This document shows, one piece after another, positions 17,308 to 57,238 of a DNA stretch of 64,000 bases (its first letter is position 1; every line of letters begins with the position of its first letter). The stretch is from assembly GCF_037042905.1 (NCBI RefSeq), contig NC_087254.1:35340001-35404000 (forward strand), read 5' to 3'. The position numbers and the translations under genes were made by a program. This DNA comes from Lytechinus pictus (lineage: Eukaryota). The notes beneath the pieces are model-generated. The model had not been told where the DNA came from and did no database searches. It saw nothing but the letters and a program-made list of their open reading frames with translations.

Positions 17308-17865
17308 ATGGCAAGTTATGAATCAGAAGGTACAAACCGAAGCTTCAAAGACCCCACACAAACAGACGACATATACCCTCCGCCCCCTGGATTCGATAGC
17401 CCTCCTAATAAACCTGATCGGTATCGGCCATATGGCGGGAAGAGCAATGGTGAGAGATCCGCCCAAAGACCTAACCCTGACACTAACTCCCCCGGCATGA
17501 ACGATGAGTATAAGAGAAGAGCGAGCGTCACGAAAAGAATATGGAGTATCCTCAAAGGAACTTTCCTTTGCGCGTGCCCGTTGTTCATCATCGGCCTCGT
17601 CCTTGTAGTTCTCGGTGTAGTCGACGTACCAGCCGGCAATGACCTCATCAAACCAGGAGCACCCATACTCATCATCGCCATGGTCTTCCTCATCGTCACA
17701 ATCATCCTCCTCGTCGTTTACAAGGTCAGGGGTATGAATGCGTACGACATCGGTCAGAACAGAATGACGGGAATTGTCAACAACGGTGTTAATGTTACAA
17801 CGCAGAGATCATCGAATGAAGAAAATCGTCATGAAAGAAACGAAGGTAATATCTATGAGGCTTGA
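17308..17865 (+). CDS. two-TM hairpin membrane protein A (paralog of the 26155 gene); possible alternative last exon 18935-18975
   Basis: Kozak-like ACCATGG at 17308 after an acceptor near 17230. Polar N-terminus, then ILKGTFLCACPLFIIGLVLVVLGVV-D-P-KP-GAPILIIAMVFLIVTIILLVVY. A phase-1 donor at 17846 matches the acceptor at 18934, giving ...RNEDSEDRRYNESRRI*. Confidence 0.85.
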   Translation: MASYESEGTNRSFKDPTQTDDIYPPPPGFDSPPNKPDRYRPYGGKSNGERSAQRPNPDTNSPGMNDEYKRRASVTKRIWSILKGTFLCACPLFIIGLVLVVLGVVDVPAGNDLIKPGAPILIIAMVFLIVTIILLVVYKVRGMNAYDIGQNRMTGIVNNGVNVTTQRSSNEENRHERNEGNIYEA

Positions 17866-20629
17866 AAAAAAGATTGTTCAACTATGGTTTAACCATGGTG
17901 ACACACTAGAAAAGGGGGTTTCCAAATCTACAATAGGAGCATTTAAGGTGTGCTGGTGGGTTTATTTGAAAGACTACCTGTTGATTATGGATTGAATAAG
18001 CAAAATGAATTTACTATGCATTTAACACAATTTTAATGTGGCTCAAAGTAAATATAACCAAGTGACAATTTTCAATGTAGAAGGACGAATTAATGGGGAA
18101 AAAGGCATTATTAATAGGCATATGTACATTTATGCACCTATATCATGTTTAATGGTGCTGTTAGCTGTATTATGCATCCAAAAGGGTGCAGAGGTGAACC
18201 ATTTTGAGGAAGTTACAAAATGTGAACTTTAAAAAAATTGATAATGTATCCAATAGGTGCAAAGTAGCAACCTTTGGTTGCCAACAGGCATTTCACGTCA
18301 CACAACAATAATATAAAGGTGCGTACACCAACACATAAACTTTCTGATAGAGACAGACATAATTTTTCTTCCAAAGATAATCATTAGAGAAGCCATTCAG
18401 AAAAGCATTATCATTTTCCATAATATGATGTATATTACATTATAGAAAGCGCAAACTTGTAATTAAAGATGTATTAACGTATTATTAACGACTTGAGATG
18501 TTTATAAAACGGTATTCAAGTTCAGTTTTTTCACGTGGTTCGTATATTTCGAAAGTTTAGAAATATTTCACTTCACCTACATGTATTACACACATATTGT
18601 GTTGAGTAATCATGAGTATCATTGCCACCCCATAACTATCTTTCATTCCTCTCTTTTCCCCCTTTATTTTCTCCCAATATGTGAGGACAGGAAATGTCAA
18701 ATTACACAATCATCGTGTCATCACTCACTTCCAGGTTTTGATATATTAGGTTGATACGTTTGAATATCATATTGCATATACTTTCAATGCAATAAATTGA
18801 GGTTAAAAGAAAAAACTAACATTGATGTATGAACGAATAGGCGTGGACATTATCCATTCAATACCTATACCCTTCCTTCTGTGCTATACCATACTGAAAC
18901 TATCAAAAATTCAATATGTTTTATCAATTCACAGATTCAGAGGATCGAAGATACAACGAATCAAGAAGAATCTAGCTTGCCACATGTCCACAAGACGTCA
19001 TTGAAAATGCCGCAGGGACTAATATAATTAGGCATACTTACAAGTTACATTGTTTATACATCCGTCACTGATTTTTATGAACCGTCAAGGACCTAATTTA
19101 CCTGAGTTGTGCGGGAACTGTACTTTTTAATCTGAAAGTAAAGTGGGTGTGGCGAGGTTACATGACACACAAAAACTGTTTCCGACGAATCGCGCTGTAT
19201 TCGACTCTCTCATTGGCTGGTTCAATCGTGTCACGTGACACCGCGGACTCGTCGGATCCGTGCAATGAAACTGTCAACGTTTTACTTTCACATAGCCGCG
19301 GCTTTGTTTGTTTTTACTTATATTGTGTAGATTTTACTGCTCAGTCTCATCGATGTTAGTCATTGTCATTGAAAAAGTATTTAAAAAAAAAACCTTATCC
19401 CCAATCATGCCAAAGTTGGATACTTATGACTGCTATCACAGGAAGAAAAATATAACGAGAATTAGTGCAGACACTTTTCAAGATATCTCTGACTGGAAAA
19501 TCATCATTTACTGTATCTCATGGGGAGATTTATATATATATATATATACTATATGTTGGTGTATGGGATGAACTTAATATGGTGTTTATGGTCACTTTTT
19601 ATTTCACTTTTGCGTAGCACTAAATAATTATTTTCGGCCTTTCTGGACTTCATTTTTTATAACATATCCCAGACACATAATAAGTGGGACCTTGTAGCTC
19701 AAAATCGATGTTAATTTATGCCTGACTGTCAAGAACAATGAGATTGCTAAGATGTTGTAAATCTCAAATGGCAAGCAGTATGAAAAACCTTCAAATTGGA
19801 AACAAACTTAGTCATTAAAAAAATCATATTTCTCTCTTCCGCATATCTGCTCTCAGGGTGGTAAATTACTATCTAACATAGATAACATTGAAATCAGAAA
19901 AGAAAAAAAAATCTGAGTAACTTATTGAAAAGAAAATATTTATGTTTTCAGTTTTGATTTATGCTATGTTATTTCTTTCATTGTGTTCATGCTCTCTTAT
20001 TCATTCACTTACCATGTTTATGTTCGATTATTTATTTTATCATGTTTATGTTCTTTTGTTTGTGGATGACACCGTTGTAAAGCAGCTTAAACGGACTACC
20101 CTGCAATGTTTTGTCGATTGTATTAAATAACACATGAATAAATAATATTTTAGTAATTTTATGCTATGTAGCATCTTTTTATATTAATTTTGTAAGCATA
20201 TTCACATATTATAGTCTAAAAAATCAAGTTGTATTTAAAAGTAAGAGCAAAAGCAGTTATTGAATTGAATTGAAGAATTGAATTTATTTCCGTTAGAAAC
20301 AATTAACAATACATACTGAAAATGACAAATGAAACGGGGGGATGGCCCTACTCAGCAGCATCAATCATGGTGCTGCTGGTCTACCGAGGGGTCCTCAATG
20401 AAATTATATGGTAAATTTTAAATTAAGATTTTGAATATATGTAAAACTGATTTATGTTTATTCCTATTACACTGTTAATGTATATAATCCGAATAAAGTA
20501 AGTGTCGAGATGAACAGCATTTAGGTACTATTTTTATTTCCTGAATGCAGTTTCAACGCCAATTTTTATTACAAAAAGATTAATAATGATAATGGTATTT
20601 ATATAATTTTTCATTATCAAGAAAAATAC

Positions 20630-20895
20630 GGACATAAAGGATAAGGAAAAGGAGAAAAGGAAGATAAATAGAGAGGAAAAAAGAAGAAGAGGAAGAAAAA
20701 GAAGAAGAAGAGGAAGAAGAAGAAGAGGAAGAAGAAAGGATGAAGAGAAAGTGGAGTTGGAAGAAGAAGGGGTAATAATAAGATGAAGAGAAGGAAGAAG
20801 AAATGTTAAAGAGGAAGAACGGAAAGAAGATGGGACAGAATATGAAATGAATAAAATGAAGAAAATAAACAAAAAGACTGAAAAGAAGCTAGAAT
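20630..20895. repeat. purine-rich (GAA/GGA) low-complexity tract
   Basis: Runs of AAGAAGAAGAGG. Confidence 0.85.
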
Positions 20896-55630: not shown

Positions 55631-56021
55631 GAGCGGTGTTGGCTCAGTCGGTAACGCGTCTGCCCGTCGAAACAAAGATCGTGGGTTCGAGTCCACCCCG
55701 GGCGGATGACTGAAGCCAGTGCGTTGTGTGTAAACGTCTCTCCCATGCTTCATAGATGCAGGCTATGTTACAATGGAAAACACTCCGTCCCTCGGATAGG
55801 ACGTTAAATGGAGGCCCCGTGTAGAGGAGAGTCACCACCTTTGCACGTTTAAGAACCCACTGCACTATTCGTATAAGAGTAGGGGGAAACCCCGGTGTAG
55901 TGGTCCACCTGCATTCCCCCCAATCAGTTATATCGGGAGGAGAGACCTGCGGGTCGTAGTGATTCAGTTCGCTTTTCGCCTCCCAGGCACAGGTGACGCC
56001 AAACAAAATAATAATAATAAT
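55631..56021 (+). mobile_element. full-length tRNA-derived SINE with (AAT)n tail
   Basis: TGGCTCAGTCGG A box, GGTTCGAGTCC B box, ~300-bp body and AATAATAAT tail. Confidence 0.9.
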
Positions 56022-56911
56022 ATTAAAACTGTATTTCTTGATTTCAAGAATTTTATTCTTTGTTTAAAAAACATACTAGTAAAATCAACATGTTCACGTA
56101 ACTCTGCATGATACTATCATGGAAGTCAAATAAAACTTCGATCCGTCATCTTTCTGCAACCACCACCCCCCCCCCCTTCCCCACTCATAAAGTCTGAATA
56201 CATGTAAGGGACGACACGAAGGGTTACAAAATACTACTCAAACAAAGGTCCAAAGATCATTTTTAAATACAGTTTAATCAAATAAGATTAAACTAGGTTT
56301 GTGGACTATCTGTCTGTAAGTTGACGTTTATACAATGCTGTAGTTGCCAAAAAAGAGTTGCAGATTCCATGGGGACTGCTGAGTGAGCTTATTCATTGTA
56401 TGGAAGTTAATTATGACGTCATCATTTACTTTATTCGAACATTTGAAATTGCTAAATATCTGTCTGAGGAGGTATACGTCAGGGAAAGAGTGAAGAATAC
56501 GGAATCAAGCTCAGTAAAATTTCAAAGCATTTGCATATTGCATGCAAAAGTCCAAGATGTTTAGGAGGAGCAGATAATTCAACAACATGTAACGGAACTG
56601 GAAATGTTTTCAAAAGTTTGAATAGAAAATCTCAGAACAAGTTTTGTTTGAGGAATTATGAGGCCGGAGTTCACCGGTGATATTCGTATCTATCACGATC
56701 AACATCAGCTAAAATGAGCTTTCCCTTCGATGATTTACACTTTATGTCATCCTCAGATCAAGAATTTTTGTAATGAAAGGAAATTTTTCTTAATTTGATA
56801 GACAGATATATCGATTGGATATTGCACGAGGACTATTCATATAGCAACGAGTTGAAAACCGCGGACAAAAATATATCTACGATGCGAATCGAGGACTAAA
56901 CTGAATCGAGA

Positions 56912-57238
56912 ATGGCCGGAGACAGTGTTACCTCGTTTAATACAAGGAACTCTCCAACTCTTCAACGAGCACGACGTTCCATCCGCAAATGCTGCTGTAC
57001 AAAGCTTCAGTTCCGAGCATCCTGCATCCTCTTCGTCAGTATAAGTCTTATCTTCGTGTCTGAATCATTGGGTGTTGCCAGCTATCTGGTGTTTATAGGT
57101 TCGACTGGAATCTTCTTCGGGATCTTCCTCATCCTGCTCGATTTCGCGCTGTTCTTACAGACTAAATCTGAGCGACATCGTCGACGGTTTGGACAAAGTG
57201 ACGAGGAGGCTGTTGGCGGAGATACCGCGATATGGTGA
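56912..57238 (+). CDS. two-TM hairpin membrane protein E (closest to gene D); probably continues in a downstream exon
   Basis: AGAATGG start. KCCCTKLQFRASCILFVSISLIF...YLVFIGSTGIFFGIFLILLDFA aligns with gene D (CC....L.FR ... G.F...D). The ORF end overlaps a phase-2 donor TG|GTGAGT at 57235, the same phase as the intron of gene D. Confidence 0.78.
   Translation: MAGDSVTSFNTRNSPTLQRARRSIRKCCCTKLQFRASCILFVSISLIFVSESLGVASYLVFIGSTGIFFGIFLILLDFALFLQTKSERHRRRFGQSDEEAVGGDTAIW

Follow-up and report, generated by a model that had tools for sequence, protein, structure and literature searches.

The window analysed here is a stretch of 64,000 nucleotides of the sea urchin Lytechinus pictus (G000:C10:35340001-35404000), to which flanks of 140 kb were added to give 204 kb in total. 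It carries five plus-strand genes, here called A to E, each coding for a protein with two closely spaced transmembrane (TM) helices that form a hairpin. An earlier note on this DNA, made from the sequence alone, had taken the five genes for a single family of membrane adaptors with PY motifs ([LP]PxY) in their tails. A hydropathy scan of stop-free frames recovered the hairpin open reading frames (ORFs) of A, B, D and E at the places previously reported, while the hairpin of C was found to be divided by an intron and to start at 34122. The coding exons of the five genes, numbered from the first letter of the window unless a genomic position is given, are as follows.

17308..17845 (+), gene A, coding exon 1: polar N-terminus, TM1 at residues 86-105, TM2 at 118-138; phase-1 donor at the end
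18935..18975 (+), gene A, final coding exon: 13 residues and a stop codon; the C-terminal peptide of protein P0001 was located at 18937-18972
26155..26817 (+), gene B: one coding exon for 220 amino acids (aa), a paralogue of A; PY motif absent
34122..34374 (+), gene C, exon 1: N-terminal region, then TM1, a loop of 10 residues and the greater part of TM2; phase-1 donor at the end
44790..45063 (+), gene C, exon 2: last part of TM2 (VCCIWGYCF), then a conserved segment predicted to be cytosolic; phase-2 donor at the end
45836..46223 (+), gene C, exon 3: disordered tail with LPSYDQAM (45846-45869) and PPAY (46194-46205)
47399..48801 (+), gene D, exon 1: N-terminus of about 380 residues, low in complexity and rich in Ser, Thr, Pro and Asn, then the hairpin; phase-2 donor at the end
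49808..50132 (+), gene D, exon 2: tail with PPDY (49851-49862) and PPSYDDVI (50040-50063)
56912..57234 (+), gene E, exon 1: KCCC in the N-terminal part, followed by the hairpin; phase-2 donor at the end (TG|GTGAGT)
G000:C10:35406954-35407191 (+), gene E, exon 2: outside the window, 9.7 kb downstream; tail with PPDY and LPSYSEIM

All five are genuine protein-coding genes, conserved and clustered, given the NCBI models for A, C and D, the RNA junctions for C and D, the ordered orthologues, the ratios of non-synonymous to synonymous substitution rates (dN/dS) and the in-frame indels. The product of gene A is 192 aa long, with a phase-1 intron about 40 residues past TM2; XP_054763931 (192 aa, L. 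pictus) is 99% identical to it, and orthologues were found in L. variegatus and Strongylocentrotus purpuratus. Gene C codes for 304 aa and agrees with XP_054763889.1 (P0009, 304 aa) at 296 of 304 residues, its L. variegatus orthologue being P0017. The spliced product of gene D, 575 aa in length, is identical to XP_054763889.2. Junctions 45063|45836 of gene C and 48801|49808 of gene D were both found with GT..AG ends in RNA contigs (run X1), and contigs of the same run also span the exons of C and D and the 3' untranslated region of C. The first version of accession XP_054763889 is thus gene C (304 aa, ‘uncharacterized LOC129270551’) and the second is gene D (575 aa, ‘mucin-2-like’); the change of version is an annotation switch between two adjacent genes.

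Gene E was assembled from its splice signals. A pyrimidine tract and CAG lead into its second exon, which the earlier note had missed. Joining donor to acceptor keeps the reading frame and yields 186 aa, exactly as many as in the gene annotated at the corresponding L. variegatus position. On these signals and the length match, the hairpin exon and the PY tail exon are one gene with a predicted junction, and E thereby joins the genes with PY tails. Exact look-up of the gene B ORF and of the E exon-1 ORF as whole proteins found neither of them in the protein collection. Gene B is an intact ORF of 228 aa in S. purpuratus (56% identity), about 5 kb after the A orthologue and conserved through the stop codon; against L. 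variegatus its identity is 88.5%, its dN/dS is 0.46 and its sole indel is of 3 nt. At the corresponding positions of the S. purpuratus and L. variegatus loci examined, no gene is called; B is a conserved gene missing from the annotation there.

All five proteins have the layout described in the earlier note: no signal peptide, a polar N-terminus, and a pair of hydrophobic helices set closely together, with Cys residues inside or next to them. An intron at or after TM2, described for each gene, is indeed present in A, in D (35 residues past TM2) and in C, where intron 1 (10.4 kb) interrupts the end of TM2, but not in B, whose coding sequence is uninterrupted.

The gap-free L. variegatus loci L026 and L028 were aligned to the window by megablast and gave one collinear chain. 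Gene order is conserved in L. variegatus for B, C, a CD20-like gene nested in C (PF04103), D (564 aa) and E (186 aa), and in S. purpuratus for A, the intact B ORF and a recognisable start of C. Between the two Lytechinus species, synonymous divergence (dS) was 0.08-0.14, and dN/dS was 0.38 for A, 0.20, 0.17 and 0.68 for exons 1, 2 and 3 of C, 0.63 and 0.16 for exons 1 and 2 of D, and 0.34 for exon 1 of E (91.7% identity). All 11 indels in coding exons were multiples of three. The best-conserved parts were the hairpins (100% identical in A and B, 96% in D, compared with 62-87% in the N-terminus of D), and exon 2 of C is still 56-58% identical in a distant urchin (P0010, P0011), where VCCIWGYCF is kept. 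The proposal of a fast-evolving local expansion is consequently doubtful, since A, B and C already stand in the same order in S. purpuratus and since dN/dS values of 0.16-0.46 indicate constraint on hairpins and tail exons.

Further hairpin ORFs lie in the flanks. U is 14.5 kb upstream of the window; on the downstream side come F, on the minus strand, and G, on the plus strand, at a distance of 9-22 kb, and then H and I. Among them are the following.

G000:C10:35325481-35325963 (+), gene U: two-TM hairpin ORF with a phase-2 donor at its end; unverified model
C10:35335842-35336636, candidate tail exon of gene U, about 10 kb downstream of it: good acceptor, in frame, PPPQY
G000:C10:35435487-35436890 (-), gene H: ORF of 468 aa, PY motif absent, sub-threshold Comm hit (PF15957, E 0.014)
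G000:C10:35444445-35445443 (-), gene I: third copy in the A/B family, 40 kb beyond the downstream end of the window

Searching the L. pictus genome with gene A returned B with E 1.6e-5 and I with E 1.7e-10, and comparison with block-preserving shuffles gave z scores of 24 for A-I, 10.4 for A-B and 4.1 for B-I. The residues that the earlier note listed as common to A and B are present, although their spacing had been abbreviated, and the similarity of the two proteins is far above chance. The hairpin core of A, B and I consists of a Trp, three to five residues, [GA]F[LI], Pro-x-Phe and a Gly in TM1, a Pro-containing loop of 12-14 residues and TM2, the Pro in TM1 being conserved. Significant similarity over this core makes A and B paralogues in an echinoid hairpin family with I. 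The C-termini of B and I have in common a hydrophobic [EQ]P[TA]VV...I[MV]; no [LP]PxY motif was found in the A family. The Cys in TM1 of B is Phe in S. purpuratus, and I has no TM1 Cys, hence Cys flanking is not a trait of the A/B family. A and B may be small hairpin regulators, and we assign them no mechanism beyond this.

A different plan was found in C, D and E, as well as in the neighbouring F and G: the hairpin is followed by a phase-2 intron, and the disordered tail, encoded by an exon of its own, bears two [LP]PxY motifs or more, of which one precedes acidic and aliphatic residues. Neither A (phase-1 intron, no PY motif) nor B (no intron, no PY motif) has this plan. The intron before the tail exon is in phase 2 in five of the five genes. 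Phase-2 introns are the rarest class in animals, and the coincidence of five such phases is therefore unlikely to have arisen by chance. Each tail holds two to four [LP]PxY motifs compared with 0.04-0.13 expected from shuffles (P <= 0.007 for each tail); the pairs noted previously, LPSY and PPAY in C and PPDY and PPSY in D, are all present and all four are unchanged in L. variegatus. One motif in each tail stands in the context [LP]PxY[DES][DEQ][VIAT][ILM], and the five occurrences of this extended motif in the six-frame translation of the 204 kb all lie in the tails of C, D, E, F and G. The tail exons of F and G both open with a CPxPx[DE]W...PPxY motif, and the first exons of E and F end in an identical Ile-Trp codon split. 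Hairpin loops are of 4-6 residues in D, E, F and G and of 10 in C, the hairpin of D being tight (TM1 393-409, loop PLPG, TM2 414-433). All five hairpins have juxtamembrane Cys, which form clusters in E (KCCC), D (KYCC) and C (VCCIWGYCF). Leave-one-out hidden Markov models (HMMs) of the hairpins scored G at 23.4 bits (0 of 300 shuffles as high), F at 14.5 (8 of 300), E at 11.2 (4 of 300) and C at 9.6 (4 of 300). From the plan and these scores, common descent of C, D, E, F and G is likely but short of proof, as the tails lack overall similarity and the hairpin of D fails with the HMM of E, F and G.

We therefore do not retain the single family of five. The genes probably fall into two sets, A and B with I on one side and C, D and E with F and G on the other, because A and B differ in loop length, intron phase, tail content and HMM scores. 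Own-genome searches, run with the hairpin exons of C, D and E and the tail exons of D and E, returned nothing but the query itself, and the HMMs of each set fail on the other. An A-family HMM built from six sequences including orthologues gave 0.3 bits for D, -1.9 for E and -0.4 for F, all within shuffles, and H scored no better than shuffles; C was a borderline case, its 5.9 bits being reached by 10 of 200 shuffles. Conversely, PY-group HMMs never scored A, B or I above shuffles. The motif said to unite D and E (CC...L.FR...G.F...D) differs in spacing between the two, and their hairpins compare with a z score of 0.22, with 124 of 300 shuffles as high.

The alternative, in line with the earlier note, is that all the hairpin genes (U, A-E and F-I) arose from one ancestor by tandem duplication, have since diverged too far for sequence comparison to recognise them as kin, and that A, B and I lost the PY tail. 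We consider this unlikely. In its favour, at least ten two-TM hairpin ORFs lie within about 130 kb, and many hairpin pairs outside the families gave z scores of 2-4 against block shuffles; such shuffles, however, may understate the similarity common to any two hairpins. With the A-family HMM, U scored 10.9 bits, a value that 0 of 200 shuffles attained, and G 9.1 bits, attained by 1 of 200; the phase-2 donor of U and its candidate PPPQY exon behind a good acceptor would make it a possible bridge. U may thus link the two sets, but its gene model is unverified, and set against it are the scores of D, E, F and H within shuffles under the A-family HMM, those of A, B and I within shuffles under the PY-group HMMs, and the differences between the sets in loop length, intron phase and tail content. 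It could also be argued that these are unrelated small membrane proteins, neighbours by accident, with PY motifs that are chance products of proline-rich disordered tails: C, D and E have no significant overall sequence similarity, and short motifs are readily found post hoc. This explanation is already disfavoured and we regard it as highly improbable, in view of PY counts above shuffles in every tail, motifs that are invariant between the two Lytechinus species while nearby residues change, a dN/dS of 0.16 in the tail exon of D, phase-2 introns before all five tail exons and the confinement of all five extended-motif matches to these tails.

Regarding topology, Lys and Arg residues number 3-5 before TM1, 1-5 after TM2 and 0-3 in the loop. 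By the positive-inside rule, charges on both flanks and few in the loop point to a hairpin with N- and C-termini inside, so both ends, and with them the PY tails, should be cytosolic. The juxtamembrane Cys residues are candidate palmitoylation sites. PY motifs are classical ligands of the WW domains in Nedd4-family HECT ligases, and C, D and E (together with F and G) would accordingly be placed as membrane-anchored docking proteins for these domains, their [LP]PxY motifs being accessible on the cytosolic side to judge from the charge distribution. Two roles would be possible: as adaptors they might recruit the ligase to other cargo in the membrane, or they might themselves be cargo that is sorted under its control. 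WW exons stand beside HECT exons at three loci or more in the L. pictus genome, and in one of these an ITCH/WWP-type linker follows a WW domain; ligases with WW domains lie at C2:43.85-43.89 Mb, C10:29.84 Mb and C5:27.73 Mb. The adaptor idea put forward in the earlier note is thus reasonable for C and D and extends to E, whose motifs are likewise conserved and above shuffles, but not to A and B, which have no PY motif. We judge the combined interpretation, two sets of genes of which the PY-tail set would provide docking proteins for Nedd4-family WW domains, to be somewhat on the favourable side of even.

Several points weigh against this interpretation. The extended motif was defined post hoc, and since WW ligands in general show a similar PPxYxxΦ context, convergence is possible. 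The tails have no overall similarity beyond short motifs (best pairs z 3.3-3.5, the rest below 2.5), and the hairpin of D scored -2.7 bits with the HMM of E, F and G, 194 of 300 shuffles being as high. The exon 1-2 junction of E is supported by splice signals and by the agreement in length but not by reads, and the three raw RNA runs gave 0 reads on C and D, which is not a valid test. The loop of C has three Arg, which makes its topology less clear. Other WW proteins, among them YAP, Kibra and WWOX, are ligand partners of PY motifs too. Lastly, a complex prediction for the ITCH/WWP-like WW exon and the last 45 residues of D scored 0.17, the mark being 0.34, which is evidence neither way.

It might also be that C, D and E are auxiliary subunits or regulators of channels or transporters, whose PY motifs and overlapping YxxΦ signals would mainly set their own surface level and turnover, in the manner of barttin or the epithelial sodium channel (ENaC), without service as ligase adaptors for further cargo. 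The architecture fits this equally well, the second motif in D, E and F reads Y-x-x-[VI] and also suits a tyrosine-based sorting signal, and the language-model neighbours described below include TMEM174 and TMEM252 clusters. No partner is known, however, and there is no Pfam match to barttin, PIRT, TMEM100 or TMEM174. We regard auxiliary subunits as a rather improbable explanation, although the results obtained here do not separate it from the docking of ligases as adaptors.

In comparisons with known families, Pfam scans of all exons and of full models of the five genes gave nothing above noise. No profile match was found for TMEM51, TMEM252, TMEM174, PIRT or barttin, with which the earlier note had proposed a comparison: PF15664 (TMEM252) had no match at E <= 10 in C, its L. 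variegatus orthologue, the C-terminal part of D or the pieces of E, F and G; PF15345 (TMEM51), PF15029 (TMEM174) and PF15105 (TMEM61) had none at E <= 10 in HMMER; and PIRT (PF15099), TMEM100 (PF16311), barttin, CD225/dispanin and LITAF were not among the hits for the five genes (E <= 1 or <= 10). Genome-wide six-frame searches with PF15664 and PF15345 gave 0 matches at the locus. The PF15345 matches on C1, C3 and C17 were set aside as unrelated Ig-like type-I receptors or low-complexity sequence; on C3, at G000:C3:28.80-28.90 Mb, three Ig-like type-I receptor genes with acidic tails and sub-threshold PF15345 hits stand in tandem, and are likewise unrelated to the genes described here. LITAF-like and dispanin-like readings, prompted by the Cys near the helices, were dropped as no profile matched.

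Protein language-model comparisons placed C nearest to a TMEM252 cluster (0.92, with 200 of 256 features in common), followed by TMEM174, TMEM51/139 and TMEM61 clusters, and the C-terminal part of D at 0.87-0.88 to the TMEM51/139 and TMEM252 clusters. The TMEM proteins named in the earlier note are thus indeed the nearest language-model neighbours of C and D, but HMMER does not confirm them. TMEM252, TMEM174, TMEM51, TMEM61 and TMEM139 resemble C and D in general size and two-helix plan, whereas no HMMER match was obtained, and we treat the similarity to TMEM252 and TMEM51 as a language-model lead only. PIRT and TMEM100 are, like A and B, small two-TM hairpins without PY motifs, but have no Pfam match to them, and their language-model scores for A (0.76-0.78) lie in a range that shuffled proteins reach. 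The literature was searched for a link between TMEM252/TMEM51-type proteins and PY motifs, WW domains or NEDD4, and no relevant paper was found. Word-based protein searches with A, D and C gave hits in Lytechinus and Strongylocentrotus and in no other genus, and exhaustive phmmer with C exon 2 added two further fragments from a distant urchin; the hairpin genes seem to be limited to sea urchins as far as these searches reached. The same phmmer searches brought out a resemblance of residues 51-84 of C exon 2 (44942-45043) to single units of bacterial FG-GAP-like repeats, at about 28 bits per unit and a summed E of 1.4e-9. Kinship of this exon to FG-GAP or ARM repeats was rejected, these weak matches being most likely due to chance inflated by repeat number.

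Other features of the window include the following.

130-1193 (+), tandem satellite with a unit of about 93 bp, which reads as a long repetitive ORF
11737-12624 (+), neighbouring gene described earlier as a secreted effector: signal peptide and N-terminal Syncollin domain (PF15138, 40.3 bits, above cut-off); C-terminal half without Pfam match
24858-25025, assembly gap between A and B
33666-34005, double assembly gap, 116 nt before the ATG of C; the L. variegatus alignment restarts at 34006, the first base past the gap
37090..41240 (-), limits approximate, nested CD20/MS4A-like gene, antisense in intron 1 of C; weak CD20 hit at 39883-40131
40739-40910, assembly gap in intron 1 of C, within the nested gene; it corresponds to 111 nt in L. 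variegatus
51256-51633 (-), ORF between D and E resembling the C-terminal part of a retroelement reverse-transcriptase gene, in a stretch without L. variegatus counterpart
55046-55361, assembly gap between D and E

None of the five assembly gaps in the window overlaps the coding exons of A to E. The collinear L. variegatus chain spans every one of them, and their flanks have the same order and orientation in that species; no gap sequence was filled in. The 5' part of the nested CD20-like gene is incomplete in the L. pictus assembly because the gap at 40739-40910 falls inside it, and a gene of 193 aa with a PF04103 hit is called at the collinear place in L. variegatus. For a functional module of the hairpin genes with this nested gene or with the Syncollin-domain neighbour, as proposed in the earlier note, we found no evidence.

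PY adaptors decide which receptors, channels and transporters are removed from membranes by Nedd4-type ligases and, to our knowledge, few families of PY-motif membrane adaptors have been described. By function, the systems closest to C, D and E are Ndfip1/2 and Commissureless. Ndfip1 and Ndfip2 (Bsd2 in yeast) are PY-motif membrane adaptors and activators of Nedd4-family ligases and, like C, D and E, are small polytopic proteins with several PPxY/LPxY motifs in a cytosolic region (a placement predicted for C, D and E) and no other domain. They have three TM helices and N-terminal PY motifs, however, in contrast to two helices and C-terminal motifs here, and no sequence or Pfam similarity was detected, so that C, D and E do not belong to that family. 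Commissureless, the LPSY/PPCY sorting adaptor of Drosophila, shares the pairing of an LPSY-type with a PPxY-type motif in the tail and is also lineage-restricted and fast-diverging outside its motifs, but it has a single TM helix and its profile PF15957 did not match C, D or E. Membership in either system fails on helix number and sequence. Barttin and the subunits of ENaC, in which an extended PY motif controls the surface level, have two TM helices, cytosolic ends and a C-terminal PY motif, as predicted for the PY-tail set, and D, E and F have a hydrophobic residue at Y+3 that agrees with the ENaC-type PPxYxxΦ context. The extracellular loop of ENaC is large, however, while the loops of the hairpin genes are of 4-14 residues, and neither barttin nor ENaC shows sequence or Pfam similarity to them.

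A wider and more speculative view would take the whole locus of about 130-160 kb, with at least ten hairpin genes, as an ancient echinoderm superfamily and the invertebrate counterpart of vertebrate TMEM252, TMEM174, TMEM51 and TMEM61. We think this quite improbable; if true, it would tie these orphan TMEM proteins to the PY-dependent recruitment of Nedd4-family ligases, with the urchin embryo as a tractable system. Independently of this, none of C, D, E, F and G is named or belongs to a described family, and the locus offers five candidate adaptors with a simple common plan in a model embryo in which mis-expression and knock-down are routine.

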